This document shows, piece after piece, positions 563-60,894 of a stretch of DNA of 64,000 nucleotides. Both the position numbers and the translations under genes were made by a program. The notes beneath the pieces are model-generated. The model was given only the letters and a program-made list of their open reading frames with translations. It did not search any database and was not told the origin of the DNA. The stretch spans positions 372,001-436,000 of the forward strand of contig JAPDFW010000067.1 of assembly GCA_028826165.1 (NCBI GenBank). The letters are read 5' to 3'. This stretch comes from Anaeramoeba ignava BMAN (lineage: Eukaryota > Protista > Anaeramoebae). The first letter of the stretch is position 1; the number at the start of each line of letters is the position of its first letter.

Positions 563-3500
563 ATGGAATTTTCTATTAATTCAGAAAGACTTGAAGAAAT
601 TATTGAAGATGACGGTGGTTTAATTTTACCTCAAAAGAAAATAAAAATATAAATGAAAAATATAAATGGAAATATAAATAAAAATATAAATGAAAATATA
701 AATAAAAATATAAATAAAAATATAAATGAAAATATAAATGAAAATTCAGATGAAAAGCATTCACATAAACATAGAGATGAAAAACATTCATATAGACATA
801 GAGATGAAAAATATTCATATAAACATAGAGATGAAAAATATTCATATAAACATAGAAATGAAAATAATGATATTTCTACCAACTCAAGAAAACATAAGAA
901 TTTATATTCAAATTCAAATGAAAAAAATTATAAAAATTATCCAAATTATTCATATTCAGATTCAAAATATTCAGATTCAAATGAAATAAATGAAAAATTA
1001 TCCAAATTATTCATATATTCAGATTCAAATTCAAAAATTCAAAATATTCAAAATATTCAAAATATTCAAATTATAAAAATGAAAAATTATTCAAATTATT
1101 CAAATTATTCAAATTCAAATAAAAAATGAAAAAAAATTATTCAAATGATTCAAACGAAACAAATGAAAAATCAAACAAAATTTCGAACACAAAAATATCG
1201 ACAAATTCAACCACCAACACACCTTTTCACACAGGAGGAGTTAATGAAAAACACTCCAACAAATAGAAGAAAGAAAAAAAGGAATGCAAAAGGAATCCAC
1301 TATTCAGAAATAAAAGAAAATCCAAAAAGAAAAAGAAAGCGGATGGGATATAAAAGACCCAAAATTAAAAACGAAAGTATCAGGAGAAGAACTAATAGAA
1401 ACACTTAAAAAAACATCATGGGATGGAAGAACACCACAAAGAAATAAAAACTCAGAATGGGATCCAACACCCCAAAGAAAACCATCTCAAACATTTGAAG
1501 CATATCGAACACCATTAGCAACGCCATCATACAAATACAACAAATGGTTCAGTCAAAACAAAGGCAACGTGAAAAAAACCACGAAGCCAAAGTTTCTCGA
1601 GAAAAAAGACGATGAAACTGACGAGGAGTTCGAAGAAAGATTGAAGGAATTTGAGGAAGCTGAGATCGATGTGGAGCGGAATTGGTACGATGCTGAAGAA
1701 TCAGGAGCTGTTGAATCAACTTCAAATACATTTTATGGAAAATTGGAAAAATTCGAATCTGTTGAACAATCTTTAGCTGTCAGACAAACACAAAAATTGA
1801 CAGCAAGACAAAACCAAATCAATCGAGAAAATGACAATTGGGAGGAAAACAGATTAATCACTAGTGGTGTTGTTGAAAGAACACAAAAGGAGGAAAACAC
1901 GCAAATAGAGCAGGATGAATCACGCATTAGCGTTATGGTTCATGATTTGAAACCGCCTTTTTTAGATGGAAGAATCGCATTTACAAAGCAAAAAGAACCT
2001 GTATTAACTGTTAGGGATCCTGGATCGGATCTTGCCAAATTTGCCAAAAAAGGAAGTAATTTATTAAGAGAAATGCGAAAGGAAAGAGAGAAAATGAAGT
2101 TTCGTCAACGGTTTTGGGAGATTGCTGGCTCCAAAATGGGAGATTCAATAGGAATCAAAGAAAAACCAAAGCTTCTTCAAGGAGACGAAAAATTTTCTTT
2201 GGAAAACGAAAATACAAATCCTCAAGAAAATACACAACCAACTAATCAAACAACCAACACTCCAGACAGCGAAGTTGTTGATTACAAAAAATCAAGTCAA
2301 TATGCGCATCATTTAAAAGAAAAAACTCAAGCAGTCAGTGAATTTTCACGCACTAAAACGCTCAAACAACAGCGAGAGTATCTTCCTATTTTCCATTGCA
2401 GAGAAAATTTGATGAAGGTTATTCGCGATAATTCCATCGTAATTGTTGTTGGACAAACAGGTTCAGGAAAAAGTCTGCGCAACTCAGCAACTGTTTATAC
2501 TCCAAACGGTCCAAAGCACAATGGGGATCTCAAGATTGGCGACTATGTTTGCACTCCAAATGGCAAAATTTCTAAAATACTGAATGTTTATCCACAGGGA
2601 AAAATTGATGTTTATAGAGTACACTTTGATTTGGATGAATTTGTGGATTGTAGTTTGGATCATTTGTGGTTTGTGAATGATAAAAAATCACAATCTAAAA
2701 AAGTTCTTTCTTGCAGTTATTTGATGAAAAATCTTTTTATTGATTCCGACGCAAATTTAAATCATAATAATGCAAATAGAAAATATAGATTTTCAATCGA
2801 TACCCCAGAATTTGTTCATTTTGCTTCCAAAAATGTTGGAATTGATCCTTATTTACTTGGCTTTTTATTATCTCAAAAATCTTCTGTTTCTGATCCACAA
2901 ACTTTTTCCAAATTTTTCCCAAATTATTCGCTTGAAGAAATCAACGAAATCAAACTTAATCTTGGGAAATACAATCTTCAAAAATATAAACAACGATAAA
3001 AAGTACTTTTATTCCAAATGATTATATTTATAATTCGAAAGAAAATCCGTATTAATATTCTGAACGGATTCCTTGATTTTTCAGGCAAAAATAAACATAT
3101 TTGATGGGAAATGTAACATTTATTTTGAATCAAGTTCATTGAAATTAATCAATTCAATTAAACTAATCGTTTATTCTCTTGGAGGAATTTGCAAAATTGA
3201 TGGAATATCAAGAAACAAATGGAGAACGAGAATTTATCATCAAAATTTGGAGCAATTCTTTTCAGACAATTCAAAGAAAACAGAAATCGAAAAATTTGGA
3301 AGTTATAAATTGGAAAAAAGAATAGTTAAAATTGAAAAAATAGGAGAGGATTTATGCCAATGTATTTATATTGATGACGAATCTCATCTTTATTTGACAG
3401 ATAATTTCACAATCACTCATAATACAACACAATTAACTCAATACTTACATGAAGAAGGATATACAAAAGGTGGGATTATTGGATGCACACAACCACGAAG

Positions 3501-6500
3501 AGTTGCTGCAGTATCAGTTGCGAAAAGAGTTAGTGAAGAAATGGGTTGTGAATTAGGAGATTTGGTTGGATATTCAATTAGATTTGAGGATTGTTCTACT
3601 AAGGATAAAACAATTATTAAATACATGACTGATGGTGGTGTTTTATTAAGAGAATCATTGCATCAATCAAATTTGGAACAATATAGTTGTGTTGTAATGG
3701 ATGAAGGTTTGTTTTCATTTCATTTCATTTCATTTCATGTTTTTGGAAAATTTTTATTAATTTAATTTTATTATTATATTTCTATTTTAGCTCATGAAAG
3801 ATCTCTTCATACAGATGTTTTATTTGGTATTTTGAAAAAAATTGTTTCTGCTCGTAGAGATATGAAATTAATTGTAACTTCAGCAACAATGGATGCTGAT
3901 AAATTTGCTTCATTCTTTGGAAATGCACCAATTTTCGAAATTCCTGGAAGAACATTTCCTGTTCAAGTAAGAAATTTATTCAAAAACAAAAACAACAAAA
4001 AACAAAATTTATTAAAACAAAAAACAAACTTTTTTTTAGATTCGATATTCAAAATATCCATTAGAAGATTATGTTGAAGCAGCTGTTAAGCAAACCATTG
4101 AAATACATTTATCAAAACCACCAGGAGATATATTAGTTTTTATGACTGGACAAGAAGATATTGAAACAACTTGTTATTGTATTTCTGATCGACTTAAAAA
4201 ATTAGGAGATGATGTTCTTCCACTTGCAATTTTACCAATATATTCTCAATTACCATCAGATCTTCAAGCAAGAATATTTGATAAAGCACCAAATAATGCT
4301 CGGAAATGTATTGTTGCTACTAATATTGCTGAAACTTCTTTAACTGTTGATGGTATTTTATATGTTGTTGATTGTGGTTATTCCAAATTAAAGGTATATA
4401 ATCCAAAAATTGGGATGGATGCTTTAACTGTTACACCAATATCTAAAGCAGCAGCAAATCAAAGATCAGGAAGAGCTGGGCGAACAGGACCTGGGACTGT
4501 AAAATTTATTTAAAATTTAATTTAAAATTTAATTTAAAATTTAATTTAAAATATAATTGAAATATTCCAAAAACATGAAATATAAAAATATAATTTAAAA
4601 TTTATTTAAAATTTATTTAAAATATTCCAAAAACATGAAATATAAAAATATAATTTAAAATTAATTTAAAATATATTTAAAATATAATTTAAAATTAATT
4701 TAAAATATATTTAAAATATAATTTAAAATTAATTTAAAAAATATATTTAAAATATAATTTAAAATTAAATTGAAATTTATTTAAAATATTCCAAAAACAT
4801 GAAATATAAAAATATAATTTAAAATTAAATTGAAATATTCCAAAAACATGAAATATAAAAATATAATTTAAAATTTAATTAAAATTTAATTGAAATATTC
4901 CAAAAACATGAAATATAAAAATATAATTAAAATATAATTGAAATATTCCAAAAACATGAAATATAAAAAAATATAATTGAAATTATAATTGAAATTATAA
5001 TTAAAATTTAATTTAAAATTAATTTGAAATTTAATTGAAATATTCCAAAAACATGAAATATAAAAATATAATTGAAATTATAATTAAAATTTATTTAAAA
5101 TTTATTTAAAAATATAATTGAAATATTCAAAAACATGAAATATAAAAATATAATTTAAAAAATTTAAAATTTAATTGAAATATTCCAAAAACATGAAATA
5201 TAAAAATATAATTAAAATATAATTGAAATATTCCAAAAACATGAAATATAAAAATATAATTGAAATTTAATTGAAATTATAATTAAAATATAATTTAAAA
5301 TTAATTTAAAATTTAATTGAAATATTCCAAAAACATGAAATATAAAAATATAATTGAAATTTAATTAAAATTTATTTAAAATTTATTAAAATTTATTTAA
5401 AATTTATTTTAAAATATAAAAAGTGCTTCCGACTTTATACATACAGACAATATTCAGAAGAACTCCTCGAAAATACAATTCCAGAAATTCAAAGAACAAA
5501 TCTTGGAAATGTTGTACTTTTATTAAAATCCTTAGAAATTGACGATCTACTAGAATTTGAATTTATGGATCCACCACCACATGACAACATGTTGAACTCA
5601 ATGTATCAACTTTGGATATTAGGAGCACTGGACAACACAGGAGATCTAACAGAACTTGGAGCAAAAATGGTAGAATTCCCATTGGATCCACCACTTTCAA
5701 AAATGTTAATTAAATCAGTCGAACTGGGATGTTCAGCAGAAATATTAACAATAGTTTCAATGCTTTCTGTTCCTTCAATTTTCTTCCGACCAAAAGATCG
5801 TGAAGATGAAAGTGATTCCAAAAGAGAAAAATTCTTCGTTCCAGAATCAGATCATCTGACGTTGCTGAATGTATATCAACAATGGAAAGCAAATCATTAT
5901 AGTTCTGATTGGGCAGCTGAACATTTTATTCATATCAAAGCACTTCGAAGAGTAAGAGAAGTTCGTTCACAACTACTTGAGATAATGAAGCAGCAAGAAA
6001 TCAAGTACATCTCATGCGAATCAAACTGGGATCTTGTTCGCAAATCGATTTGTTCCGCATTTTTTCATCACGCGTCAAAAATCAAAGGATTAGTTGAATA
6101 TGTTAATTTACGAACAGGCCTAACTTGCCACTTGCATCCCACAAGTTCTCTATACGGATCAGGTTTCACGCCTGACTACGTTGTGTACCACGAACTAGTC
6201 ATGACTACAAAAGAGTTTATGCAGTGCGTTACTGCTGTAGAGCCCGAATGGCTCGCTCAACTTGGTCCTATGTTTTTTTCTTTAAGACTCAATTTTGCAG
6301 ATCAATCTCTTAGAAAAAAAAACGAAAAACAAAAGCAGGATTTGCTTAATATGGAAAAGGAACTCTTGGAAAAACAAATCCAAAAAGATCGAGAAAAATG
6401 GAAGAGCAAAAAGAAGAAAATTAATTAATAGTAAAAAGAATAGTTTGAAACAATCTTATATTGGAACTCCAAGAAGAAAACCAAGAAGAATCGGTCTTTA

Positions 6501-6501
6501 A
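563..6501 (+). CDS. PRP16: Pre-mRNA splicing DEAH-box RNA helicase Prp16/DHX38; intein-containing, 3 introns, several homopolymer frameshifts
   Basis: Motifs reconstructed by hand: [31 protein letters not shown]^[26 protein letters not shown]|AHER (intron 3707-3790), SAT, PGRTFPV|IRY (intron 3967-4039), [13 protein letters not shown]|CFRLYT (intron 4499-5423), MDPPP, C-terminal [14 protein letters not shown] 563 ([22 protein letters not shown]) is inferred across frameshifts. Confidence 0.93.
748..862 (+). repeat. About 4 copies of a 27-bp coding repeat (HRDEKYSYK-like) in the Prp16 N-terminal region
   Basis: catagagatgaaaaa(c/t)attcatata(a/g)a repeated in tandem; seen in ORF 653..1129. Confidence 0.8.
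2472..3423 (+). mobile_element. Class 1 intein with degenerate LAGLIDADG-type endonuclease region, inserted in Walker A of Prp16
   Basis: 952 nt between GSGK and TTQL. Block [14 protein letters not shown]...GDLKIGDYV, block B DCSLDHLW, block C-like DPYLLGFLL, blocks [25 protein letters not shown] followed by +1 Thr. Confidence 0.95.
4499..5423 (+). repeat. 925-nt intron of PRP16 filled with an AT-rich minisatellite (aatattccaaaaacatgaaatataaaaatataatt plus aaaattt spacers)
   Basis: GT at 4499 and AG at 5422-5423 join GPGT to CFRLYT; the core unit recurs about 10 times. Confidence 0.88.
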
Positions 6502-6626: not shown

Positions 6627-7754
6627 TCAAAATATTTTTCTTATAAGTATAGTAGGTCCACTTTCATCATATTCTTCTTTTGTAATCCATACAGATTGGA
6701 AAGTAGAAAGTGATGCTAAAATTGAACCTCCAATCCATGATGAATATTTTCTATCTGGATCTGCAATAATTTTAATTTCCATTTTATCAGGAATAATTTG
6801 TTTAATTTCTTTTTCAAGTCTTTCTTTAAAATTTGGGAATAATGTTGTTCCTCCTGTTAATATAATATTATTGAAAAAATCTTTTCTTGATGAAATATCA
6901 CAATTCATAATTGAATTATAAATTAATTTATGAATTCCTTCTAAATCAATTCCAATTATTTTAGGTTCAAATAAACATTCACAACATTTGATTCTTTCAT
7001 TTGAAATACTGATAATATCTCCATTTTTTAATTCATAAGCTTCTTCTAATTCAGTTTCATTTTGATTTAATTCTTGTTGAAAATTAAGAGAACAATAACA
7101 TAATTTTTCTTTAATATCTCTTGCAATTTCAATATCACTTGATTTTTCAAATGAATAATCTTGTTTTTTAAGTAATTTAATCAAATAATTTGTTAAATCA
7201 TTTCCTCCAAATTGATATTGATCAATTATATTATAAATTTCATATCCTTCATAAATTGGTTCAGTAAAAGTAATTTCATGTCCAATTCCAAAAACAAATC
7301 CAGTTGTTCTTCCTGTTGAATATAATGTTAATATTCCTGAATTTCCAAGATAAAATGCTGGTGTATTAAATGTTTCAAACATGATTTGTTTTATTTTATC
7401 TTTAGAACTTTTTGGATTAAATGGAGAATCAGCTATTAAAACTGGATGTTCTTCAGGTGCAATTTTTAATTCATTATAAAAGATATGATGCCACATTTTT
7501 TCCATATTATCCCAATTTTCAATAATTCCTTTTTGAATTGGATAACTTAAATTTAATATTTCTTTATTTTCTTGTGCTTCATTTCCAATATATTGTGATT
7601 TAGATAAATTTATTAAATTCGATTCATTTATTAAATTCCCAATAATATTTCTTGTATTCTTTTTTGGTAAATCATCTCCAGCAAAACCTGATCTAATTTC
7701 AAATGAACCATTATCAATAACAATAGCTTGATAATCAATATCTTCTTCAATCAT
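6627..7754 (-). CDS. Divergent actin-like protein, copy 1 (intact, 375 aa, intronless)
   Basis: [68 protein letters not shown]. Confidence 0.92.
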   Translation of the reverse strand: MIEEDIDYQAIVIDNGSFEIRSGFAGDDLPKKNTRNIIGNLINESNLINLSKSQYIGNEAQENKEILNLSYPIQKGIIENWDNMEKMWHHIFYNELKIAPEEHPVLIADSPFNPKSSKDKIKQIMFETFNTPAFYLGNSGILTLYSTGRTTGFVFGIGHEITFTEPIYEGYEIYNIIDQYQFGGNDLTNYLIKLLKKQDYSFEKSSDIEIARDIKEKLCYCSLNFQQELNQNETELEEAYELKNGDIISISNERIKCCECLFEPKIIGIDLEGIHKLIYNSIMNCDISSRKDFFNNIILTGGTTLFPNFKERLEKEIKQIIPDKMEIKIIADPDRKYSSWIGGSILASLSTFQSVWITKEEYDESGPTILIRKIF

Positions 7755-7861
7755 TTTATTTAAAAAAAAAATGAAAAAAATGAAAAATTATTTTTCTGAT
7801 TTTTTAAAAATGAAAAATAAATTTCTTCTCTTATTTTTTGATTTTTAAAAAAAAAAGTAAT

Positions 7862-9020
7862 TTAAAATAATCGACCACGAGTAATACTAGGTCCACTTTC
7901 ATCATATTCTTCTTTTGTAATCCATACATTTTCGAAAGTAGAAAGTGATGCTAAAATTGAACCTCCAATCCATGATGAATATTTTCTATCTGGATCTGCA
8001 ATAATTTTAATTTCCATTTTATCAGGAATAATTTGTTTAATTTCTTTTTCAAGTCTTTCTTTAAAATTTGGAAATAATGTTGTTCCTCCTGTTAATATAA
8101 TATTATTGAAAAAATCTTTTCTTGATGAAATATCACATTTCATAATTGAATTATAAATTAATTTATGAATTCCTTCTAAATCAATTCCAATTATTTTAGG
8201 TTCAAATAAACATTCACAACATTTGATTCTTTCGTTTGAAATACTGATAATATCTCCATTTTTTAATTCATAAGCTTCTTCTAATTCAGTTTCATTTTGA
8301 TTTTGGTTTTCAGTTTCATTTTGATTTAATTCTTGTTGAAAATTAAGAGAACAATAACATAATTTTTCTTTAATATCTCTTGCAATTTCAGTATCATTTG
8401 ATTTATCAAATGAATAATCTTGTTCTTTAAGTAATTTAATCAAATAATTTGTTAAATCATTTCCTCCAAATTGATATTGATCAATTATATTGTAAATTTC
8501 ATATCCTTCATAAATTGGTTCAGTAAAAGTAATTTCATGTCCAATTCCAAAAACAAATCCAGTTGTTCTTCCTGTTGAATATAATGTTAATATTCCTGAA
8601 TTTCCAAGATAAAATGCTGGTGTATTAAATGTTTCAAAACATGATTTGTTTTATTTTATCTTTTAGAATTTCTTGGATTAAATGGAGAATCAGCCATTAA
8701 AAGTGGATGTTCTTCAGGTGCAATTTTTAATTCATTATAAAAGATATGATGCCATATTTTTTCCATATTATCCCAATTTTCAATAATTCCTTTTTGAATT
8801 GGATAACTTAAATTTAATATTTCTTTATTTTCTTGTGCTTCATTTCCAATATATTGTGATTTAGATAAATTTATTAAATTCAATTGATTCATTTATTAAA
8901 TTTCCAATAATATTTCTTGTATTCTTTTTGGTAAATCATCTCCAGCAAAAACCTGATCTAATTTTCAAATGAACCATTATCAATAACAATAGCTTGATAA
9001 CCAATATCTTCTTCAATCAT
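7862..9020 (-). CDS. Divergent actin-like protein, copy 2 (frameshifts in homopolymers)
   Basis: Near-identical to copy 1; ATG at 9020 ([17 protein letters not shown]); ORF fragments 7862..8443 and 8656..8892. Confidence 0.85.
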
Positions 9021-9153
9021 TTTATTTAAAAAAAAAATGAAAAAAATGAAAAAAATGAAAAAAATGAAAAATGAAAAATGAAAAAAATGAAAAAAATGAA
9101 AAAATATTTGAAAAGTCAATCATAATTCGAAAAAAAAAATAATTCAAAATAAT

Positions 9154-10414
9154 TCAAAATAATCCGCCATAACTCATCATATCCTCATCCTCACTTTCAC
9201 TATATAATTCTTTTGAAATCCACATATTTTGGAAAGTAGAAAGTGATGCTAAAATTGAACCTCCAATCCATGATGAATATTTTCTATTTGGATCTGCAAT
9301 AATTTTAACTTTCATTTTATCAGGAATAATTTGTTTGATTTCTTTTTCAAGTCTTTCTTTAAAATTTGGAAATAATGTTGTTCCTCCTGTTAATATAATA
9401 TTATTGAAAAAATCTTTTCTTGATGAAATATCACATTTCATAATTGAATTATAAATTAATTTATGAATTCCTTCTAAATCAATTCCAATTATTTTAGGTT
9501 CAAATAAACATTCACAACATTTAATTCTTTCGTTTGAAATATTGATAATATCTCCATTTTTTAATTCATAAATATCTTCTAATTCAGTTTCATTTTGATT
9601 TTGGTTTTCAGTTTCATTTTGATTTAATTCTTGTTGAAAATTAAGAGAACAATAACATAATTTTTCTTTAATATCTCTTGCAATTTCAGTATCATTTGAT
9701 TTATCAAATGAATAATCTTGTTCTTTAAGTAATTTAATCAAATAATTTGTTAAATCATTTCCTCCAAATTGATATTGATCAATTATATTTGAACTTTCAT
9801 ATCCTTCATAAATTGGTTCAGTAAAAGTAATTTCATGTCCAATTCCAAAAACAAATCCTGTTGTTCTTCCTGTTGAATATAATGTTAATATTCCTGAATT
9901 TGCAAGATAAAATCCTGAAACGTTAAATGTTTCAAACATGATTTCTTGTATTTTTTCTTTAGAACTTTTTGGATTAAATGGAGAATCAGCTATTAAAACT
10001 GGATGTTCTTCAGGTGCAATTTTCAGTTCATTATAAAAGATATGATGCCACATTTTTTCCATATTATCCCAATTTTCAATAATTCCTTTTTGAATTGGAT
10101 AACTTAAATTTAATATTTCTTTATTTTCTTGTGCTTCATTTCCAATATATTGTGATTTAGATAAATTTATTAAATTCGATTCATTTATTAAATTTCCAAT
10201 AATATTTCTTGTATTCTTTTTGGTAAATCATCTCCAGCAAAACCTGATCTTATTTCAAAATGAACCATTATCAATAACAATAGCTTTATAATTATTCTGA
10301 TTGGAAATGAATTGACTATTAGTCTCTGTCAATTTGTATGTAGAATCACCAAAAATACCATCAGAATCACTTGTAGAATTTTCAAAACCAAAACTGTCAA
10401 AAATCGTCAAACAT
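9154..10414 (-). CDS. Divergent actin-like protein, copy 3, with acidic N-terminal extension and distinct C-terminus
   Basis: ORF 9154..10062 plus upstream sequence reading (with frameshifts) MFDD..SFGFENSTSDSDGIFGDSTYKLTE...[11 protein letters not shown]. Confidence 0.82.
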
Positions 10415-10543
10415 TTATTTTTATTTAGAAGTAAATAAGAAAAATGAAAAAGAAAACGTCATTTAAAAATAAAAATATTTTTGCTTTTTAAAATTGAAAA
10501 AAGAAAAAAGAGAAAGAAAAATGGAAAAATTTTAAAAAGTAAT

Positions 10544-11671
10544 TCAAAAACTCCACGCTGTCTAATAATACTAGGTCCACTTTCATCATATTCTTTCTTT
10601 TGAAATCCATACAGATTGGAAAGTAGAAAGTGATGCTAAAATTAACCTCCAAATCCATGATGAATATTTTCTATCTGGATCTGCAATAATTTTAATTTCC
10701 ATTTTATCAGGAATAATTTGTTTAATTTCTTTTTCAAGTCTTTCTTTAAAATTTGGAAATAATGTTGTTCCTCCTGTTAATATAATATTATTGAAAAATC
10801 TTTTCTTGATGAAATATCACATTTCATTATTGAATTATAAATTAATTTTATGAATTCCTTCTAAATCAATTCCAATTATTTTAGGTTCAAATAAACATTC
10901 ACAACATTTAATTTTTCATTTGAAATACTGATAATATCTCCATTTTTAATTCATAAGCTTCTTCTAATTCAGTTTCATTTTTGATTTAATTCTTGTTGAA
11001 AATTAAGAGAACAATAACATAATTTTTCTTTAATATCTTCTTTGCAATTTCAATATCACTTGATTTATCAAATGAATAATCTTGTTCTTTAAGTAATTTA
11101 ATCAAATAATTTGTTAAATCATTTCCTCCAAATTGATATTGATCAATTATATTGTAAATTTCATATCCTTCATAAATTGGTTCAGTAAAAGTAATTTCAT
11201 GTCCAATTCCAAAAACAAATCCAGTTGTTCTTCCTGTTGAATATAATGTTAATATTCCTGAATTTCCAAGATAAAATGCTGGTGTATTAAATGTTTCAAA
11301 CATGATTTCTTGTATTTTTTTTTTTAAATTTCTTGGATTAAATGGAGAATCAGCTATTAAAACTGGATGTTCTTCAGGTGCAATTTTCAGTTCATTATAA
11401 AAAGATATGATGCCACATTTTCTCCATATTATCCCAATTTTCAATAATTCCTTTTTGAATTGGATAACTTAAATTTTATTTCTTTTATTTCTTTGTTTCA
11501 TTTCCAATATATTGTGATTTAGATAAATTTGTTAAATTCGATTCATTTATTAAATTCCCAATAATATTTTTGTATTCTTTTTGTAAATCATCTCCAGCAA
11601 AAACCTGATCTAATTTCAAATGAACCATTATCAATAACAATAGCTTGATAATCAATATCTTCTTCAATCAT
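10544..11671 (-). CDS. Divergent actin-like protein, copy 4 (many frameshifts: pseudogene or unpolished sequence)
   Basis: Colinear with copy 1 from ATG 11671 to TGA 10544 (...GPSIIRQRGVF). Confidence 0.75.
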
Positions 11672-11802
11672 TTTATTTAAAAAGAAAAATGAAAAATGAA
11701 AAATGAAAAATAGAATTAGGGATAAAAATGAAAATTGAGGAATTTTGTTTTATTTAACGATTTATTAAGAAGAGAAAAGAATTGAAAAGAAAAAGTAATT
11801 AA

Positions 11803-21795: not shown

Positions 21796-24558
21796 ATGAA
21801 ATTAAACCTTTTCTTTTTCCTTTCTCTTTTTCTTAATTATCAATATTTTCTTAATTCAATCAAACCAAAATCAAAATCAAAATCAAAATCAAAAATCAAA
21901 ATCAATTTCATCATTAATATCACCAATATTAACAGAAATAAAAACATTAACAAGAAACAAGATATTATTCTTCTTTCAATGAAGCTTGGATTTGGAATTT
22001 ATTAGATCAATTTTCAGGTCCAGCAAGTTTTTGGATTTTCTGTTTCAATTTATAAAGATGTTCTTGTTATTGGAACTCGTAATGCAGGCCAAGTATTTAT
22101 TTACAGATATAATGGAACAAATTTTGAACTTGAACAAAATTTGGATGAACCTTCATATTTCTATTTTGGATATTCTGTTTCAATTTATAAAGATGTTGTT
22201 ATTGGGACTGCTGAAAAACATGCATTTATTTACAGATATAATGGAACATTTTGGAATCAAGAACAACATTTGAGTGGATCAGCTACATATTTTGGAGATT
22301 TTGTTTCAATTTATGAGAATGTTACTGTTATTAGTAATTATGGTGCAAATCAAACATTTATTTACAGATATAATGGATCTATTTGGAATGAAGAACAAAT
22401 TTTGAGTGAATCAGTTACATATTTTGGATATTCTATTTCAATTTATAAAGATGTTATTGTTATTGGTGCTCGTGATGTAAATCAAGCATTTATTTACAGA
22501 TATAATGGATCATTTTGGAATCAAGAACAACATTTGAATGGAGCTTCAGCTTCATATTTTGGAAGTTCTGTTTCAATTTATGAAGATGTTATTGTTATTG
22601 GTGCTTGGGGTGCAAATGAAACATTTATTTACAGATATAATGAATCAACTTGGAATAAAGAACAAATTTTGAATGAATCTTCTGTTTCAAATTTTGGAGA
22701 TTCTGTTTCAATTTATGGAGATGTTATTGTTATTGGAGCTGCTTATGATGTAAATCAAGCATTTATTTACAGATATAATGGAACATTTTGGAATCAAGAA
22801 AAAATTTTGAATGGACCTCCAGCTTCATATTTTGGAAGTTCTGTTTTAATTTATGAGAATTTTACTGTTATTGGAGCTGAGAATTCATTTCAAGTATTTG
22901 TTTATGAAGTTAGTTTAATTCCACAAGTTAATATTGTTAATTGTTCATCTTTGTTTTCATTATTTGATTGTTATTGGGATAAAATTGAATTTCCTTCAAA
23001 TTTGAAATATCAAATTAATTATGGATATAATTGGATTGATATTGATTCTCCAATTCTTGAAGATGAGAATGTTTATTATCAACAATTCAATTCTTCATTT
23101 TATGATAATATTACTGGAAATGAATATTATTCAATTCAAATTCAAGCTTGTGATAATGAATCAATGATATGTGGTGAATCTTCTTCTTTCATTAATTTAA
23201 CAACAAAAATTGATTCTGTAAAAGATTTCCAATTATCAAATCCTTCAAACAATTCAATTAATGTTACTTGGAATTATCCAAATGTTCAGATCAATGAAGG
23301 AATTGCTCATCTTGATCATTATAATCTTTCTTATCTTAATCAATCTCAACCTGATTTAATATCTTTCATTTCAGTTGATAATTCTTCACTTGATTATTTT
23401 TGGAATAATTTAGAATGTGAAAATGATTATAATATTTCAATTTGTGGATGTAGAACACATGAATGTGAAGGAGATGATAAAGGAGAAATTGTTGAATCAT
23501 CAATTTCATTAATATTTGGAGAAGTTACAAATTTTTCATGTTCAATTTCAAATTCAATCGATATTAATTGTAATTGGAATCAACCAATTAATTGTTCAAT
23601 TCCATTTTATTATAATTTTACTTATCAATCAATTTATCAAAATGATTCAGGAAATTATCAACCAACTTCAACAAATCAACAATTCACAGTTCAATTACCA
23701 AATCAAGAATATCAAATCAATATATCATCATGTAATTCAAATGGAAAATGTGGATATATTTCATCAATTTCAATTACAACTGATAATTTAACAGCAGCTC
23801 CAACAATTTACGAAACAATTTCCAAAACTGAAGAAATTGAATTTAATTTCACAAAATTAACAAATGCAAATAATTATTCAATTTCACTTAATAATGGAAC
23901 AAATTGGGAAAAATTCACATCTCTTGATTTAAGTGGAAATGAAGTTATTGGAATAATAAGTGGAATACCTGGAAATATTGAATATAATATTTCAATTCGA
24001 GGATGTGTTGATTTAAATTGTGAAACACCATATTTAGGAGAACCAAGTTCAATTATTTCAACAAGAGCTAAATTAGGAAATATTACTTCATTAAATTGTT
24101 ATGCAATAATTAATGGATTTATTTGTAATTGGGGTTCATTAATTTTATCAAGTGGATTAAAATCATATTCATTTAGATTTAATTCAATATCAATTTGTTT
24201 AACAAATTTGCCGAATTATTATTCAATTCCTTCAGGATTACAAGGAGGAGAATATTATGAAATTTCAATTTATTCATCAGCTACATTAAATTGTTCAGAT
24301 AATCAATATTCAGGAATTAATTCAACAACATCAATTACAATATTATCTCCTTATCAACCAACTCAATCAACTGATTCAAACAATTCCAATGCAACAGCAA
24401 TAACTATTGGAATTCTTATTCCAATTATTATTATTTTAATAATTATTATTGGAATTCTTTTATATCAGAAAAAAACAAGAACAAAAAAACAAAAACAATC
24501 CAAAAATCTAAATCAAAAACAAGAAGAAAAAGAACTTCAAGATAATTTAGATATTTAA
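21796..24558 (+). CDS. Type I membrane protein: signal peptide, 7 FG-GAP-like propeller blades, FN3-like domains, TM, short tail (copy 1; 5' frameshifts)
   Basis: Repeats FGxSVSIYxDVxVIGA...FIYRYNGxxWNxEQxL; SINVTWNYP; TM ITIGILIPIIIILIIIIGILLY. Confidence 0.8.
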
Positions 24559-25324
24559 TTCCAATTCCAATTTCAATTTTCCAAATTCTTTTTTCTTTTC
24601 AATTTTAATTTCCAAATTCTTTTTTTCTTTTTCTCTTTTCAATTCAAAACAATCTATTTTCCAAATTCCAAAAAAAAACAAAAACAAAAACAAAAACAAA
24701 AACAAAAAAAACAAATTTATTATTTTTTGATTTTGATTTTGATTTTAATTATTTTAAAAAAGAAAAAGAAGAAATTATTAATTAAATTCAAAAACAAAAA
24801 TTTAAACAAGAAATAATTAATAAAATTAAATAGAAATTAATTATTTCCAATTAAATCAAAATAAAAATCAAAAAAAATTTAATTTAAATTAATTTAATTT
24901 AAATTAAAATTAACAAAAAGAAAAACAATTTAAAGAGAAATTATTGAAAAAGAAACCAAAAGAAAAAAAGATAAAACAGATAAATATTCCAAAAATATTT
25001 AAAATTAAAATAAAAACAAGAAAAAAAATTTTTTTTTAAAATTAAATTAATTAAAAAAAATTTAAAAAAAAAAACAAAAGATCATTTTTTCTTTTTTCTT
25101 TTTTCTTTTCTCTTTTCCTTTTAAAAAAAACCAAAAAAGTAAGAAAAAAACATAAAAATAACACAAAAAACAAAAACACAAAAATTTATTTTTATTTTTA
25201 TATTAAATTTATTTTTATTTAAAAAAAAGCACAAAACAAGTAAGAAAAACATAAAAAAAACACAAAAAACACAATTCAATTATTTTTGTTTATTTATTTA
25301 AAAAAAAGCAAAAAAAAAACAGAA

Positions 25325-28021
25325 ATGAAATCAATTCTTTTCTTTTCCTTTTTCTTTTTCTTAATTATCAATATTTTCTTAATTCAATCAAACCAAAATC
25401 AAAATCAAAAATCAATTCCATCATCATTATTAACAGAAACAACAAGATATTATTCTACTCCAGATGAAGCTTGGATTTGGAATTTATTAAGTAATTATAC
25501 AGGTCCAGGAGATTATTTTGGAAGAAGTGTTTCAATTTATAAAGATGTTCTTGTTATTGGAGCTTATGATGTAAATCAAGCATTTATTTACAGATATAAT
25601 GGAACAAATTTTGAACTTGAACAAACTTTGGATGGACCTTCAGTTTCAGCATTTGGAAGAAGTGTTTCAGTTTATGAGAATGTTACTGTTATTGGAGCTC
25701 TTGCTGAAAATCAAGCATTTATTTACAGATATAATGGAACATATTGGAACGAAGAACAAATTTTGAATGAATCAGCTTTATATTTTGGAAGTCCTGTTTC
25801 AATTCATAAAGATGTTATTGCTATTGGAGCTTCTTCTGTAAATCAAACATTTATTTACAGATATAATGGAACATTTTGGAATCAAGAACAAATTTTGAGT
25901 GAATCAGCTTTATATTTTGGATCTTCTATTTCAATTTATGAGAATGTTACTGTTATTGGAGTTTATGATGAAAATCAAACATTTATTTACAGATATAATG
26001 GATCATTTTGGAATCAAGAACAAATTTTGAGTGAACCTTCAGCTTTATATTTTGGATATTCTGTTTCAATTTATGAGAATGTTACTGCTATTGGAGCTCC
26101 TAATGCATTTGAAGCATTTATTTACAGATATAATGGAACATTTTGGAATGAAGAACAAATTTTGAATGAATCTTCTGTTTCAAGTTTTGGAGATTCTGTT
26201 TCAATTTATGGAGATGTTATTGCTATTGGAGCTCCTTTTTCAAATCAAACATTTATTTACAGATATAATGGAACATTTTGGAATCAAGAAAAAATTTTGA
26301 GTAAATCAGCTTTATATTTTGGATTTTCTGTTTCAATTTATGAGAATTTTACTGCTATTGGAGCTCATGGTGCAGATCAAGTATTTGTTTATGAAGTTAG
26401 TTTAATTCCACAAGTTAATATTGTTAATTGTTCATCTTCATTTTTATCATTTGATTGTTATTGGGATAAAATTGAATTTCCTACAACTTTGGAATATCAA
26501 ATTAATTATGGATATGACTGGATTGATATTGATTCTCCAATTCTTGAAGATGAGAATGTTTATTATCAACAATTCAATTCTTCAATTTATGATAATATTA
26601 CTGGAAATGAATATTATTCAATTCAAATCAAAGCTTGTGATAATGAATCAATGATATGTGGTGAATCTTCTTCTTTGATTAATTTAACAACAAAAATTGA
26701 TTCTGTAAAAGATTTCCAATTATCAAATCCTTCAAACAATTCAATTAATGTTACTTGGAATTATCCAAATGTTCAAATCAATGAAGGAATTGCTCATCTT
26801 GATCATTATAATCTTTCTTATCTCATTCAATCTCAACCTGATTTAATATCTTTCATTTCAGTTGATAATTCTTCACTTGATTATCTTTTGAATAATTTAG
26901 AATGTGAAAATGATTATAATATTTCAATTTGTGGATGTAGAACACAAGAATGTGAAGGAGATGATAAAGGAGAAATTGTTGAATCATTATTTCCATTAAT
27001 ATTTGGAGAAGTTACAAATTTTTCATGTTCAATTCAATATTCATTAGATATTAATTGTAATTGGAATCAACCAATTAATTGTTCAATTCCATTTTATTAT
27101 AATTTAACTTATCAATCAATTTCTCAAAATGATTCTGGAAATTATCAACCAACTTCAACAAATCAACAATTCACAGTTCAATTACCAAATCAAGAATATC
27201 AAATCAATATTTCAGCATGTAATTCAAATGGAAAATGTGGATATATTTCATCAATTTCAATTACAACTGATAATTTAACAATATCTCCAATAATTTATGA
27301 AACAATTTCCAAAATTGAAGAAATTGAATTTAATTTTACAAAATTAACAAATGCAAATAATTATTCAATTTCACTTAATAATGGAACAAATTGGGAAAAA
27401 TTCACATCTCTTAATTTAAGTGGAAATGAAGTTATTGGAATAATAAGTGAAATATCAGGAAATATTGAATATAATATTTCAATTCGAGGATGTGTTGATT
27501 TAAATTGTGAAACACCATATTTAGGAGAACCTAGTTCAATTATTTCAACAAGAGCTAAATTAGGAGATATTACTTCATTAATTTGTTATGCAATAATTAA
27601 TGGATTTATTTGTAGTTGGGATCCATTAATTTTATCAAGTGGATTAAAAGCTTATTCATTTAGATACAATTTAATATCAATTTGTTTACCAGATTTAAGA
27701 ACTTATTATTCAGTTCCAGGATTACAAGGAGGAGAATATTATGAAATTTCAGTTTATTCATCAGCTAATGAAACTTGTTATTATGATCCAAATTCAGGAA
27801 TTGAATCAATAATTTCAGTTACAACTTTATCCCAAACTAAAGAAACAAATGATAATTCCAAAGGCACAATAATCATTTTAGCAGTACTTCTTCCAGTTGT
27901 TGTTATTGCAGCACTTATTTTTTTCATAATTTTGATTAAGAAACAGAAAAATAGTATCAAAAAGAATTATCAAAAAGAGAAAAAGAACTTGAAAAATCAG
28001 GGAGGAATTGAAATGATTTGA
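25325..28021 (+). CDS. FG-GAP propeller/FN3/TM surface protein, copy 2
   Basis: ATG 25325, signal MKSILFFSFFFFLIINIFLIQS, seven ~40-aa blades, stalk near-identical to copy 1, TM IIILAVLLPVVVIAALIFFIILI. Confidence 0.85.
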   Translation: MKSILFFSFFFFLIINIFLIQSNQNQNQKSIPSSLLTETTRYYSTPDEAWIWNLLSNYTGPGDYFGRSVSIYKDVLVIGAYDVNQAFIYRYNGTNFELEQTLDGPSVSAFGRSVSVYENVTVIGALAENQAFIYRYNGTYWNEEQILNESALYFGSPVSIHKDVIAIGASSVNQTFIYRYNGTFWNQEQILSESALYFGSSISIYENVTVIGVYDENQTFIYRYNGSFWNQEQILSEPSALYFGYSVSIYENVTAIGAPNAFEAFIYRYNGTFWNEEQILNESSVSSFGDSVSIYGDVIAIGAPFSNQTFIYRYNGTFWNQEKILSKSALYFGFSVSIYENFTAIGAHGADQVFVYEVSLIPQVNIVNCSSSFLSFDCYWDKIEFPTTLEYQINYGYDWIDIDSPILEDENVYYQQFNSSIYDNITGNEYYSIQIKACDNESMICGESSSLINLTTKIDSVKDFQLSNPSNNSINVTWNYPNVQINEGIAHLDHYNLSYLIQSQPDLISFISVDNSSLDYLLNNLECENDYNISICGCRTQECEGDDKGEIVESLFPLIFGEVTNFSCSIQYSLDINCNWNQPINCSIPFYYNLTYQSISQNDSGNYQPTSTNQQFTVQLPNQEYQINISACNSNGKCGYISSISITTDNLTISPIIYETISKIEEIEFNFTKLTNANNYSISLNNGTNWEKFTSLNLSGNEVIGIISEISGNIEYNISIRGCVDLNCETPYLGEPSSIISTRAKLGDITSLICYAIINGFICSWDPLILSSGLKAYSFRYNLISICLPDLRTYYSVPGLQGGEYYEISVYSSANETCYYDPNSGIESIISVTTLSQTKETNDNSKGTIIILAVLLPVVVIAALIFFIILIKKQKNSIKKNYQKEKKNLKNQGGIEMI

Positions 28022-29660
28022 GTCGATTTCTTTTTTTTTTTTCATTTTCAATTCAAAAACAAGAATAATAAAAAATCAATTTCAATTCTCTTTCTTTCTT
28101 TATTTTTATCATTTTAATTTAATTTAATTAAAATCAAATTAAAATGGTTTTTATTTAATCTTCTTTTTCTTTTTCTCTTTTCCTGAAATAAATTGTTCTA
28201 ATTTAAATCTTTCTGGTGATAAATTTATCATTGGTTTTTCAATCAATAAAAATGTAATTATTGAAATAGGATAAACAACTAAAGTAGTTTTTAAAATCAA
28301 AAGAAAACTATTTCTAGTATCAATCCAATCAAATCCAAATTTTTTGATTATATCAACTTCCAAAAGAAAAATAGGAACCAATTCAGTCAAATATAAAGAA
28401 TAAGAAAGATTTGAGAAAGGAATCCAAATTTTTAAAGAAAGAAAATAATTGAAAAAATTTCCAAAAATTCCTGCTTTGTTGATAATAAGTAATATTAATA
28501 AAGAAGCACCTATTGAATTGATAATTCTGTTAAAAGAAAATAATCGAATGATAATTTGTTGAAGAACTGTAATATTTTCTATTTGAATATTTGAAGTATA
28601 ATGAGTTGTTCTGAGAATAAATAAAGATGAAAATAAAATCAATCCAATCAAAAGAATCATTAATCTAAATGGTTTGGATTTCTGACATTTTTCAGGAAAA
28701 GATGTTCTGTATTGAATAAAAGCAGCAAAACACCCAATAAGAATTAATGGGAATCTTGAATGAAATCCAAAATACAAAAACCACAACCCCAAATTTTTTT
28801 GATCAAGAGATTCTGGATGATTGAAAACAAAATTTCCTGTTTCTGGCTCGAAATGAAAAAGTGTGCAAAGTTGCTCATCCCAAGGTTCAGTGTATAAAGG
28901 GTATCTATGGAACTCTGGAACAAAAATCACATACAGCAAATAGAAAATCAAAGCAATCACAAATATCTTTATCAATAATTTTGTGGAATCTTTTCCTGTT
29001 TTCATCATTTGATTTTTAATGTAAAGAAGAATAAAATATGTTTTCATTTCAGTTGCAACAGACCAAGAATGAGCAACAGGTGTATATTCATTCCATAGTT
29101 GCATATCATTCAGAAAAAACATTGTCAACAAGATTTGAGGGATTCCTGCTTTAAGATCATTAAGAGCAACCAATTCAAGAATTTTCAATAAAATGAAAAA
29201 ATAGATCAAAGGATAAAGTCTTAGAAATCTTCTGATCAAAAAATTGGTGAGATATCTCAATCTTATTCTTAAATCCAAATTTTGAATTGTATTCCCCTTT
29301 AATTCAGAAAGAAATCTTGAATAAACCAAAAATCCAGAAAGAATAAAAAAGATATCAACTGAAGAATCTCCCATTAAAATTATTTTTAGAATTGGATTTG
29401 GGAGAACTCTACTTAAAATTCCATGTTCACTTAGCCAAAGATAGATAATTATATTATGGAATGTGAAAATCCAGTAAGAAGCAAGTGCTCTAATTCCATC
29501 AAATGCTTGAATATGATTCCTTGAAGGTCTTGAAAATATTGATTTAAAATTTCTAATTGGATTAAATGCTGAAAAAAATTTCATTAAAATAATCAGATTA
29601 AAACTTGAAAAAATTAAATGAAAAAAAATGAATTTAAACAATTCAAAAAAAATTTGTTTT
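26653..29660. repeat. Left arm of an inverted segmental duplication (partner 60808-64000)
   Basis: Reverse complement of 60808-64000 matches across the acyltransferase, its flanks and the FG-GAP gene stalk; the right arm runs off the window. Confidence 0.85.
28151..29584 (-). CDS. Acyltransferase-3 (OafA/NRF-6-like) multipass membrane O-acyltransferase, copy A
   Basis: FDGIRALA...H, VDIFFILSGFL, RRFLRLYP, HSWSVATE, LSYSLYL, LIEKP. Confidence 0.9.
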   Translation of the reverse strand: MKFFSAFNPIRNFKSIFSRPSRNHIQAFDGIRALASYWIFTFHNIIIYLWLSEHGILSRVLPNPILKIILMGDSSVDIFFILSGFLVYSRFLSELKGNTIQNLDLRIRLRYLTNFLIRRFLRLYPLIYFFILLKILELVALNDLKAGIPQILLTMFFLNDMQLWNEYTPVAHSWSVATEMKTYFILLYIKNQMMKTGKDSTKLLIKIFVIALIFYLLYVIFVPEFHRYPLYTEPWDEQLCTLFHFEPETGNFVFNHPESLDQKNLGLWFLYFGFHSRFPLILIGCFAAFIQYRTSFPEKCQKSKPFRLMILLIGLILFSSLFILRTTHYTSNIQIENITVLQQIIIRLFSFNRIINSIGASLLILLIINKAGIFGNFFNYFLSLKIWIPFSNLSYSLYLTELVPIFLLEVDIIKKFGFDWIDTRNSFLLILKTTLVVYPISIITFLLIEKPMINLSPERFKLEQFISGKEKKKKKIK

Positions 29661-29716: not shown

Positions 29717-32700
29717 TCAATTCGCAGAAAATAAAATTTCAGCAAGAAAAAAATCACCATTTCCAGAACCAGCAATCAAATATCTTTGGTCAAAAAGAAA
29801 AGAAAGCGACAAAATTTCTTGATCAGTATTGATTTTGGAAATCAATCGCAAAGTTTCAACCTCTCTAATATCAATAAACCCTTTTCCACCAAGAAACATA
29901 AACTGTGAATTATGCATAACAGAAAAAGAATAAACAGAATCAAGAGAAGATAACTGGCGAATAAGCCTTCCATTGATATTCAATAAAGAAATTTTGATTC
30001 CGTTCTGTGAAAGAAATACAATATCGCCATTTCTTGTTATTTTCAACAAAGAGATTTGCGAACTTTCCTTCTCATGGAAAGTGAAAAGATGCTTTCCTTT
30101 AAATAGAGTATGTGCAATAATATTGCCGCTATTGGATCCACTGATAACAATATCCAAATTAACATCCAAACCAACACTTGTGACTTCGTCTTCGTGCTCA
30201 AAAAAACTGTGAAGAGGAGTTTCGTTGAAATGCTGGATATCCTTGCATTCCCACACAGAAACAGATCCCTCTTGCGATCCTGTAACAAGATAGTTTTTCA
30301 TATAAGCAATGCAAGTGACAATCCCTTTATTTGCGGAAATACTTTGCGAGATTCGAGAATTTTCCAAGTTGATAACCACAAAGCTTGAGTCGGAAAGCCC
30401 GCAACAAAACGCAAACTTTCCCAAGTCATCCACCTGAAAGCATTGCGGGTATTTTTTGAGATCAATCCCAAAAGTTCGATCTAATATGAATTGTGATGAT
30501 ATTGAGAATTCCGTTTTGAGTACTGATTTTTCATATTTTAATTGTGTGGCCAAGTTGGTATAATATAGATCATGAACTCTTATTCTGCGTTCTGAGCTGA
30601 ACGTGAAAATCTTGCAGAATTTGGCAAGGAAAAACACATTCTCATGATATTCAACTCCTTTTAAAAATAAAATGGGATAATCCTCGATTTTTCCTTTGTG
30701 ACCGCGCAACGTGATTGGTTGGTATTTTAATTGGATACTTAAAAACGGATTTCCGATCTGAGAAAGTTGCAGTCTTTTTGGATGCGGTTTTTTGAAAAGT
30801 TTCTTGGGTATTTGACCAAGAGCTTTGATTTGCATCTCTGTGATCTGGATCTGCTGCTTATCTAGCTTTGAAAAATCAGCAGAATTCCCATATATTAAAG
30901 GATAAAAAACATTCATCGCCTTCTGCGCCTCGGCTCCTCTCTGTTTGTATCCGAATATCAGGTCAATCCATTCGTGGAGATGCGCGGAAACGTATTCCGA
31001 TTCAAGCGCTTGACGGTGAATCCTGATGAAGTCCTTCGGATTCTTTGCCCATCTCGGAAGTTGTGCATCCGGTATTTTCGGTCCTTTTTTATCCGGATAA
31101 GAAGAAGTTATGATGTTGATGTTTTCAAGGAATTCGGGAAAATAAAAAAATTCGGGAATCAGCTCTCGAACATCGTTCTGATTTGTAAGGCAACTTTCCC
31201 ACGCATCCGAAATGCTGTTCACAGCAATTGATTGCGATATTCTTCTTGTTTTCTTGAAAAAAAGTGATGTGAAAGGCTCCATTCGGAAGAGAAAAGAAAG
31301 CACAATCATTGGGTTGGAATAATGCTTTCCGTAGAAAAACGGCTTCATTTTCTTCTTCTTTTTGATTGTTTGGAAAGTTCTCTGGTATTTCTGGGATAAA
31401 TCTGGATTTAGCGCTCCAATCGGTTTTGACAGATCGCGATATATTTTTTCGTCTGATAAATCGATTGCTTCTGATTTGTAATCTGTCAATATCCACGGAA
31501 ACACAGGATATTGCGATAAATCATTGTAACTTCTTCCAGCAAGCGTATTCAACTCCATCAAATATTCAAAGTTACTGATATCTCGATGTCTCCATTTCCG
31601 GAAACTACTCAATTCCTTGATCTTGATTTTCTCAGAAATATTCTCGCTCAGTTTGAGCTGTTTGTGGTTAAGCAAAAAATTCACTACTTTTTCTCGTGAT
31701 TTTGTTGAACCAAATCGCAGAAAACAAGGATGCGATTTTGCAAAGAATACTTCAAGTGAATTGTTCTGATGCAGAAAAGTTCTTCTGTAAATTTTGGAAA
31801 TGTCCGATATTTCCCACAAATTAAGAAGAATCAAAGAATCATTTGAAACCGTTGATGGGAAAGAAATCTCATCTTCATCATTGTCTCCATCTCGGCTTCT
31901 ATTCGTTGTTTGATCACCGCTTTTTGTTGGTGTTATTTGGAAGAGAAGCAAGTATTTCTGTTGAATCGAAAGAAACCCTTGGATTTCGTTTTCCAAAAAA
32001 ATCCAAAAGCAATGAACGATCAAATCATCATCCGATTGCGTTTTTGCCAAGTTGAAAATTCGTTTTTTCTCTTCGTCTGTGTTTATTCTCCTCTTCCTGA
32101 TGATTTTATCGAGAAAAACGAATCTTTGGTTTTCTGAAATGGGATATTTAAATAAATTTTGTTTGATGTCTTCAGACCATTGGATATCTAGGATAAATCT
32201 GCGTCGCATTGAGTCTTCCTTGCTCGATAGTCTGAAGAAGAAAGAAGGGTGTTCTTCTCCAAATTCTTTGTGGTATTTTGTATGGGAATAATGGTATCTT
32301 TTTAGGCGAGTTAAAGGTTGATATTGTTCATAAAGTGACTTGGCAATAAACGGCTTAAAATCTTGGAAAGACGATATAACTTTCTGTTTTTGCTCGAAAT
32401 CCACCGAGAATAATCGTTGTCTCTCCTCCTTGAATATTGGCTCTTGGAATTGCTTGTTGATTTCGTTGATTTGTTGTTCTGTTTCCTTTTCTTCCATTTC
32501 GGAATTTTGAGATAATTCATTTGTCATCACACCAAATATCATTACTTGAGCCTCTAAAAATATTTTTGTGTCTTGGAAATTCTTAATTTCAACCTGCTCT
32601 TTGTACTGCCAAAACGTTTTTTTCATCGCATTCTCGAATCTGCTTTCACTAAGCATCTCACGAAATTCTTGGAGTTGCATTTTGAATATTTTGGATTTTT

Positions 32701-47100: not shown

Positions 47101-49452
47101 TATTTATAATTTAATTTATAATTTTAATTTATAATTTTATTTATAATTTTAATTTATAATTTTATTTTAATTTTTTTTATTTATATTTTAATTTATAATT
47201 TTATTTATAATTTTATTTTATAATTTTAATTTATATTTTAATTTATAATTTTATTTATAATTTTATTTATAATTTTAATTTATAATTTTTATTTATAATT
47301 TTTATTTATAATTTTTATTTATAATTTAATTTATAATTTTAATTTATAATTTTATTTATAATTTTATTTTATGAATTTATTTTTATTTTTTATTTTTAAT
47401 TTTATAATTTTATTTATAATTTAATTTATAATTTTAATTTATATTTTTTTTTTTTAATTTATATTTATATTTATAATTTATATTTATAATTTAATTTATA
47501 ATTTTAATTTATAATTTTAATTTATAATTTTATTTATAATTTTTATTTATAATTTAATTTATAATTTTATTTATAATTTTATTTATATTTTTATTTATAA
47601 TTTTATTTATAATTTTATTTATAATTTAATTTATAATTTTATTTATAATTTAATTTATAATTTTTATTTTATAATTTAATTTATAATTTTATTTTTATTT
47701 TTATTTTTTTTATTTATAATTTTTATTTATAATTTTAATTTATAATTTTATTTATAATTTTAATTTATAATTTTTAATTTATAATTTTATTTATAATTTT
47801 ATTTATAATTTTAATTTATAATTTTATTTATAATTTTATTTTAATTTTTAATTTATAATTTTATTTATAATTTTTATTTATAATTTTATTTATAAATTTA
47901 ATTTATAATTTAATTTATAATTTAATTTATAATTTTATTTATAATTTAATTTATAATTTAATTTATAATTTAATTTATATTTAATTTATAATTTTATTTA
48001 TAATTTAATTTATAATTTTAATTTATAATTTTTATTTATAATTTTTATTTATATATTTTATTTATAATTTTTTTATTTATAATTTTTTTTTATAATTTAA
48101 TTTATTATTTTAATTTATAATTTTAATTTATATTTTTATTTTATAATTTTATTTATAATTTTATTTATAATTTTTATTTATAATTTTAATTTATAATTTT
48201 ATTTATAATTTTAATTTATAATTTAATTTATAATTTTATTTATAATTTAATTTATAATTTAATTTATAATTTTTATTTATAATTTTATTTATAATTTTAT
48301 TTATAATTTTATTTATAATTTTATTTATAATTTAATTTATTTTTATTTTAATTTTTATTTATAATTTTTATTTTTATAATTTAATTTATAATTTTATTTA
48401 TAATTTTAATTTATAATTTTATTTATAATTTTTATTTTTATAATTTTATTTATATTTTTATTTATAATTTTAATTTATAATTTTATTTTATAATTTTATT
48501 TATAATTTTATTTTATAATTTTATTTATAATTTATTTTTTTTAATTTTATAATTTTATTTATAATTTTATTTATAATTTTATTTATAATTTTTATTTATA
48601 ATTTAATTTTATAATTTTATTTATAATTTTATTTATAATTTTATTTATAATTTTATTTATAATTTTTATTTATAATTTAATTTATAATTTTATTTATATA
48701 TTTTTTATTTATAATTTTATTTATAATTTTATTTATAATTTTATTTATAATTTTATTTATAATTTTTAATTTATAATTTTAATTTATAATTTATTTTTAT
48801 TTATTTATAATTTTATTTATATTTTTATTTATAATTTTATTTATAATTTTATTTATAATTTTATTTATAATTTTTATTTATAATTTAATTTATAATTTTA
48901 TTTATATTTAATTTATAATTTAATTTATATTTAATTTATAATTTTATTTATAATTTAATTTTATTTTTATTTTATAATTTTTAATTTATATTTTAATTTA
49001 TATTTTTATTTATAATTTAATTTATAATTTAATTTATAATTTTATTTATAATTTAATTTTTATATTTTTAATTTATATTTTTATTTATAATTTTATTTAT
49101 AATTTTATTTATAATTTTTATTTATAATTTTTATTTATAATTTAATTTATAATTTTATTTATAATTTTATTTATAATTTTATTTATAATTTTATTTATAA
49201 TTTTATTTATAATTTTATTTATAATTTAATTTATAATTTTATTTATAATTTTATTTATAATTTAATTTATAATTTAATTTATAATTTAATTTATAATTTT
49301 ATTTATAATTTTATATATAATTTATTTATAATTTAATTTATAATTTTATTTATTATTTGGATTAAGAACATTCTTTTCATCTATTTGTAATTTTTTTTTA
49401 TTAGAAAATAAATTTAAATTTTTTTTTACTTTTGATTCTTAAAGAATTGCAT
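41106..49452 (-). CDS. Beta-helix (polymorphic membrane protein-like) + Cys-rich + ~7-TM membrane protein; predicted 23-nt first exon 49452-49430
   Basis: IYVSTNGND..PCKTL start, FxxN/GGAI repeats, CGNNREGILCGKCKDGY and multiple TMs. Splicing 49429-44491 gives the in-frame signal MQFFKNQNWFFKILIILFLLTYETKA. Confidence 0.78.
44491..49429 (-). repeat. About 4.9-kb predicted intron made of a degenerate 11-13-bp A/T repeat (ataaaattataa)n
   Basis: Only a handful of G/C bases between about 44515 and 49350; GT and AG ends restore frame. Confidence 0.8.
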
Positions 49453-60775: not shown

Positions 60776-60894
60776 TAAGTCTTATTAAATTCATTTTTGT
60801 GTCATTTGGAAAAGAAAACAAAATTTTTTTTTTTGAATTGTTTAAATTCATTTTTTTTCATTTAATTTTTTCAAGTTTTAATCTGATTATTTTA

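Follow-up and report, generated by a model that had tools for sequence, protein, structure and literature searches.

The window, a 64,000-nucleotide stretch of an Anaeramoeba ignava contig, carries near its start a Prp16 gene interrupted between the Lys and Thr codons of its Walker A motif by an intein-coding insert (Table 1). Prp16 exons were searched singly, and the host was named from exons outside window positions 2200-3800; the exon 4 piece scored 390 bits against PRP16 (DHX38) and 241 against the next helicase, in agreement with the host proposed by the initial annotation. A protein search retrieved GenBank KAJ5075069.1 (Anaeramoeba ignava Prp16), which models the window copy. Reading of the sequence also bore out the proposed GK^T insertion site and both borders of the insert: GQTGSGK runs up to 2471, the Ser codon AGT follows at 2472, Thr-His-Asn extends to 3423, and TTQLTQ resumes at 3424. 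Just two Prp16 loci were found in the genome. The sister copy lies on the same contig, 27 kb past the window, and carries the same intein intact, as an in-frame insert whose removal restores the conserved Walker A motif. The approximately 316 extra codons originally counted hold for this sister copy (948 nt), but for the window copy only after four extra A's are discounted: its insert of 952 nt is no multiple of 3, the upstream frame is closed by TAA at 2997-2999, and both the His-Asn terminus and the C-terminal blocks are read in a different frame from the upstream part.

Table 1. Features of the Prp16 locus and its intein (window positions, unless the contig is named).
Feature	Position	Strand	Details
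Prp16 N-extein (exon 1, first part)	563-2471	+	Ends with Walker A GQTGSGK (2451-2471)
Intein-coding insert, window copy	2472-3423	+	952 nt
Block A	2472-2513	+	Ser1 (AGT 2472)
Block B	2643-2675	+	Cys60, Ser61, His64 (2661), Trp66 (2667, class 3 signature)
Degenerate LAGLIDADG endonuclease domain	2841-3190	+	Blocks C, E, H
'Intron' of GenBank model KAJ5075069.1	2886-3084	+	199 nt
Four +1 A differences	2980-3091	+	In A-runs of 4-5, at 2980, 2998, 3042, 3087; versus sister copy
Blocks F and G	3340-3423	+	Cys294, Cys296 (3361, F4 nucleophile position), Thr314 (3415), His315, Asn316
C-extein start, through exon 1 end	3424-3706	+	Thr+1 (3424) of TTQLTQ
Spliceosomal intron 1	3707-3790	+	84 nt, GT-AG, 14% GC; by homology, GenBank model concurs
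Intron 2	3967-4039	+	73 nt, GT-AG
Intron 3	4499-5423	+	925 nt, 7% GC, satellite
Prp16 exon 4	5424-6501	+
Sister insert	contig 463641-462694	-	948 nt = 316 aa, stop-free

About 19 kb around Prp16 is duplicated in inverted orientation on the contig (C68, ~451700-470360 versus window -4400 to 14900), and the second copy of this block extends to the contig end. Divergent actin-like genes, tandemly arrayed on the minus strand (6627-11734), also lie within the duplicated block. Elsewhere in the window, inspection by eye suggested repeated membrane proteins that show fibronectin-III-like domains and short repeats resembling beta-propellers (22141-28021 and 62632-63978), a pair of acyltransferase-like membrane proteins (28151-29641 and 60799-62322), a BEACH-WD40 protein (29717-37102), and a PEP/pyruvate-binding-like protein of possible bacterial origin (50914-52524). 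A satellite of ~4 kb in which G/C is nearly absent occupies 45001-49000.

Within the conserved exons, 8 indels and 6 substitutions separate the two Prp16 copies. All of the indels (7 single A's in A-runs and 1 repeated TGG) can be classed as homopolymer or stutter differences, and the six substitutions, each at a third codon position, are synonymous without exception; the SNPs of the window copy include 2516G, 2564C, and 3507T, with others at 5993 and 6374. Break sites differ between the loci, and the copies are complementary in that where one is broken the other is whole. Besides the four extra A's within the insert, the window copy has one additional TGG at 3633 and one A fewer at both 6394 and 6408, whereas at 5820 the extra A belongs to the sister copy and the window copy is intact. 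Many small indels relative to the sister copy also occur at 632-1326, and the sister exon 1 is open across 1049 codons. Polishing is poor where duplicates are near-identical. R9 Nanopore reads underlie the assembly, which was polished with Pilon (PMC11550330). Since the breaks fall at different homopolymers in each copy and all coding substitutions are synonymous, comparison of the two copies makes it very likely that the frame breaks of the window copy are long-read (Nanopore) assembly errors. A genuine pseudogenised duplicate, with the frameshifts present in the cell, would be in keeping with the concentration of most breaks in the window copy, with the distinctness of the copies (the six coding substitutions and a difference of ~590 nt in the satellite intron 3, the sister copy having the shorter one), and with the pseudogenised inteins reported in Anaeramoeba. 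This alternative is nonetheless improbable, as indels are more numerous than substitutions and fall in homopolymers, no substitution changes the protein, and the extra A of the sister copy would leave zero intact Prp16 if all breaks were real. The same pattern of four homopolymer insertions was found in one of the three copies of a dynein intein (L013; contig C113, ~182600-183600). The window probably holds the more error-laden of the two Prp16 copies. Another copy of a sister intein with frame breaks was noticed at C103:385-1282, and Prp22 and a dynein gene occur in three near-identical copies each, either as duplications or as separated haplotypes.

The HINT blocks A, B, F, and G that the initial annotation had seen can be aligned with those of hundreds of inteins, but that reading overlooked both the degenerate LAGLIDADG domain and a class 3 signature, which consists of Trp at B12 (W66), Cys at F4 (C296), and Thr at G5 (T314; together W-C-T). 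The block B His, the terminal His-Asn, and Thr+1 are all present. His64, Trp66, Cys296, Thr314, and His315 are invariant across 65 aligned inteins, and W, C, and T occur together in 181 of 189 extracted inteins, two of them from Anaeramoeba. The initial annotation had named the lack of a Hint-profile hit as grounds for rejecting an intein. Pfam and NCBIfam searches on window pieces indeed returned no Hint hit, and Pfam on the intact intein returned 0 families at E<=0.001, yet sequence, profile, and fold searches agree in supporting an intein, so that the absent Pfam hit is no refutation. In protein searches, which used the intact intein of the sister copy with only the intein portion scored, phmmer matched gp41-1 inteins (E 1e-7), and a family profile matched both PI-SceI and the DnaB inteins of class 3, with E values from 1e-15 to 1e-19. 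The proteins matching at E<=0.001 numbered 9,921; in the best hits, the matching segments are inteins of P-loop proteins, among them PhoH, RecA, DnaB, and terminases. An AlphaFold model (pLDDT 94.5) placed inteins on top in Foldseek, with target TM scores of 0.78-0.83 to mini-inteins and matches to PI-SceI-type inteins with endonuclease (E 9e-14) and class 3 DnaB mini-inteins. The element is thus a genuine intein with a HINT plus LAGLIDADG fold. Any single Hint model hits at most 8 of the 65 aligned members; Hint profiles are insensitive to this lineage, and a profile hit was not treated as defining.

The LAGLIDADG_3 profile, which matches 53 of the 65 aligned members, scores the Prp16 intein at E 0.17. 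Gln135 (2874) and Ser203 (3081) occupy positions at which Asp is found in 48 and 51, respectively, of 58 relatives, and both conserved aspartates of an active LAGLIDADG homing endonuclease are therefore replaced. With this loss, the Prp16 intein probably no longer homes. The LAGLIDADG domains of the other aligned Anaeramoeba members are similarly decayed.

Removal of the entire insert as an RNA intron was considered and rejected, as it starts with AGT and ends with AAT, leaving no GT-AG at its borders. The GenBank model instead excises 199 nt inside the insert, and, taken literally, this spliceosomal intron would remove the dead endonuclease core and yield a 251-aa intein. GT...AG ends are present and used by this public model, but the intron preserves the frame only thanks to the fourth extra A; the same stretch measures 196 nt in the intact sister copy, where its excision leaves 7 stops. 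Moreover, its GC content of 27% is that of the intein, against 7-15% in the three real introns of the gene, and it codes for a recognisable block E. We regard a real intron here as extremely unlikely; it is probably a gene-prediction artefact bridging the errors. There are 151 donor-acceptor pairs inside the insert that could restore the frame, and the pair chosen by GenBank fails in the sister copy. KAJ5075069.1 should therefore be used with the warning that a false intron is probable. GenBank labels the proteins of sister inteins 'intein-containing'; KAJ5075069.1 is without this label. As separate observations, an apparently transcript-derived dynein in EukProt (P0011) retains a full sister intein, so that a relative seems to be kept in mRNA, and a DEAH helicase (L028/L031; contig C82, ~880500) has an empty GETGCGK^TTQ site with an apparent intron ~10 nt past it, resembling the cases of introns near insertion sites in PMC10710043.

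Taken together, the element lodged between Lys and Thr of the Prp16 Walker A motif is likely to be an intein that splices in cis, belongs to the class 3 (W-C-T) lineage, and carries an inactive LAGLIDADG domain; that it splices is probable from its anatomy, signature residues, and fold. The gene would be translated into a single precursor, in which the split Walker A motif should preclude ATP binding before splicing. Going by the class 3 inteins that have been tested, Cys296 at block F4, aided by His64 and Trp66, probably attacks the Lys-Ser1 peptide bond; the N-extein would then be transferred to Thr+1, Asn316 would cyclise, and an O-to-N shift would yield GSGK-TTQ and an active helicase. Class 3 inteins such as MP-Be DnaB and Msm/Mch DnaB1 (PMC2807308, PMC5222942, PMC7664689) have Trp B12, Cys F4, Thr G5, His B10, Thr+1, and a P-loop site in common with the Prp16 intein and match it in profile and fold, whereas the latter starts with Ser and resides in a nuclear eukaryotic host. 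Fungal and algal Prp8 inteins likewise occupy a nuclear, essential spliceosomal protein, but they are class 1, have other F4 residues (Trp in Prp8) and other sites, and match in fold only.

Ser1 makes the class assignment less straightforward. Class 3 is defined with a requirement for Cys at F4 (PMC2807308, PMC5222942), and its original definition excludes Ser, Thr, or Cys at the N-terminus (PMC2807308); the Prp16 intein departs from it in Ser1 and conforms to the Ser/Thr rule for position +1 in Thr+1. Class 1 would accommodate Ser1 but not the W-C-T signature; at F4 that class usually has Asp, where Cys is found here, and in block B it usually has Thr-x-x-His, where Ser-x-x-His is found. On account of Ser1, we file the intein under class 3 by signature and lineage, without counting it as a member in the strict sense. 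By 2009, three W-C-T inteins beginning with Ser or Cys had been noted and left untested (PMC2807308), and no later test of Ser1 W-C-T inteins was found in the literature searched. The initial annotation was right about the identity of the first residue; since the class 3 signature is present, however, Ser1 is probably not the starting nucleophile, and analogy favours a class 3 route in which splicing begins at Cys296. The same intein using Ser1 as a working nucleophile, whether along the class 1 route alone or along both routes, is a less likely solution. Conservation of Ser1 in all nine members of the Anaeramoeba clade described below and in its two closest PhoH relatives speaks for such a role, as does Ser-x-x-His in block B, whereas F4 is Cys and not the Asp usual in class 1. 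In addition, residue 1 varies among 269 related inteins (~170 Ala, 20 Pro, 20 Ser, and 19 Glu, with intein starts placed automatically), while W, C, and T are fixed, which favours a passive Ser. Ser1 may accordingly be inherited and catalytically passive, and Cys296 remains our preferred initiator.

The Cys-x-Cys at block F raises the further idea that the intein was exapted as an oxygen or redox switch holding Prp16, dynein, kinesin, and DHX37 inactive when oxidised. The class 3 DnaBi1 intein of Mycobacterium smegmatis is redox-locked via its F4 Cys (PMC6195587), the host is anaerobic, and Cys-x-Cys occurs in nine of nine clade members. The partner residue in DnaBi1 is Cys48 (PMC6195587), however, and Val stands at its equivalent here, 17 residues ahead of the His of block B; Cys-x-Cys is likewise found in 93 of 269 outside relatives. 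We consider such a switch, proposed by analogy alone, highly unlikely.

Related Ser1 inteins occupy GK^T sites in two dynein P-loops, two kinesins, and DHX37 of A. ignava, in ASCC3-like and RecA-fold proteins of the same species (named via flanking motifs only), and in a kinesin of A. flamelloides; these Anaeramoeba inteins are 36-48% identical to the Prp16 intein. Nine Anaeramoeba Ser1 inteins formed one clade in a quick tree (SH-aLRT 99), and seven did so in a more careful tree (support 98/97) that left out the two longest branches and an SNF2 intein. The last of these, in an SNF2-type helicase (C71:847218-847409), has Ala1 with W-C-T and falls outside the clade on a long branch. The comparison with other inteins of this genome, proposed in the initial annotation, hence places the Prp16 intein within an Anaeramoeba P-loop clade. 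Distant relatives of the family were also seen at C46:651331-652311 and C106:82678-83127. As for the equivalent site in Prp2, Prp22, and Prp43, whose inspection had also been proposed, it is empty in Prp2, in the three copies of Prp22 (orthologues of both located elsewhere in the genome), and in three further DEAH helicases, and it holds a sister intein in DHX37; of the 12 helicase matches that were scored, none was Prp43.

Among outside sequences, those found to lie closest are two Ser1 PhoH inteins (P0213 and P0214), encoded on phage-like metagenomic contigs that carry phage-type genes. Both share with the Prp16 intein the first five residues SLRNS, W-C-T, Cys-x-Cys, and the GK^T site, but differ in having both endonuclease motifs intact, at 36-38% identity to the Prp16 intein. 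They adjoin the Anaeramoeba clade in the tree with moderate support (92/85); their divergence marks them as kin of the donor and not as the donor itself. The P0213 site, GPAGTGK^T, is identical to that of dynein AAA1 (L008:1501-2433), whose intein is also the best genome match of P0213 (45%); together these suggest entry into the genome via dynein. In the history we propose, a phage PhoH-type Ser1 intein would have entered the genome, spread among unrelated P-loops, and later lost its nuclease. The phage-like relatives and the single clade spanning several A. ignava P-loop hosts support the horizontal or intragenomic acquisition put forward initially. A bolder version, in which the Ser1 W-C-T clade is a mechanistic hybrid started by either Ser1 or Cys F4 and passed from phage PhoH to the dynein AAA1 site GPAGTGK^T and thence to Prp16 and other P-loops, appears doubtful at best. 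Phage-like contigs with PhoH inteins (L036:18105-20255 and L032:8519-9574) also encode the actin-like protein Volactin, and one Volactin gene has an intein of its own.

In kind and organism this intein is already known, and very probably in host as well. Gallot-Lavallee 2023 (PMC10710043) reports 103 inteins in A. ignava and names Prp16 a single time in its text, beside Prp8 in the RNA-processing category. It also describes 'cluster 1' inteins, which are class 3-like, have atypical, phage-shared N-terminal residues, all lie in P-loops, and branch together. The Prp16 intein, which sits in a P-loop and groups in the tree with the other P-loop inteins of Anaeramoeba, is very probably a cluster 1 member and presumably one of the published entries. 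It shares with that cluster the species, the P-loop, the class 3 look, the phage-shared N-terminal residue, and a clade across unrelated hosts, and nothing in this description sets it apart in kind. The added value is modest, given that five inteins are already present in A. ignava Prp8 and that Prp16 has been published as a host. A small addition, from sequence comparison, is the finding of Ser1 PhoH inteins with intact endonuclease motifs on phage-like contigs as the closest outside relatives. These relatives offer material for studying how homing between unrelated P-loops could occur, and the Ser1 W-C-T inteins form a natural series useful for asking which nucleophile initiates.

Prp16 is essential in yeast. 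No Prp16 lacking the intein was found in the genome search, nor did protein searches yield a transcript-derived Prp16 protein. Since no intein-free Prp16 was found, mature Prp16 would need protein splicing, in line with the dependence proposed at the outset: if the intein splices as proposed here, second-step RNA splicing in A. ignava depends on a protein-splicing event.
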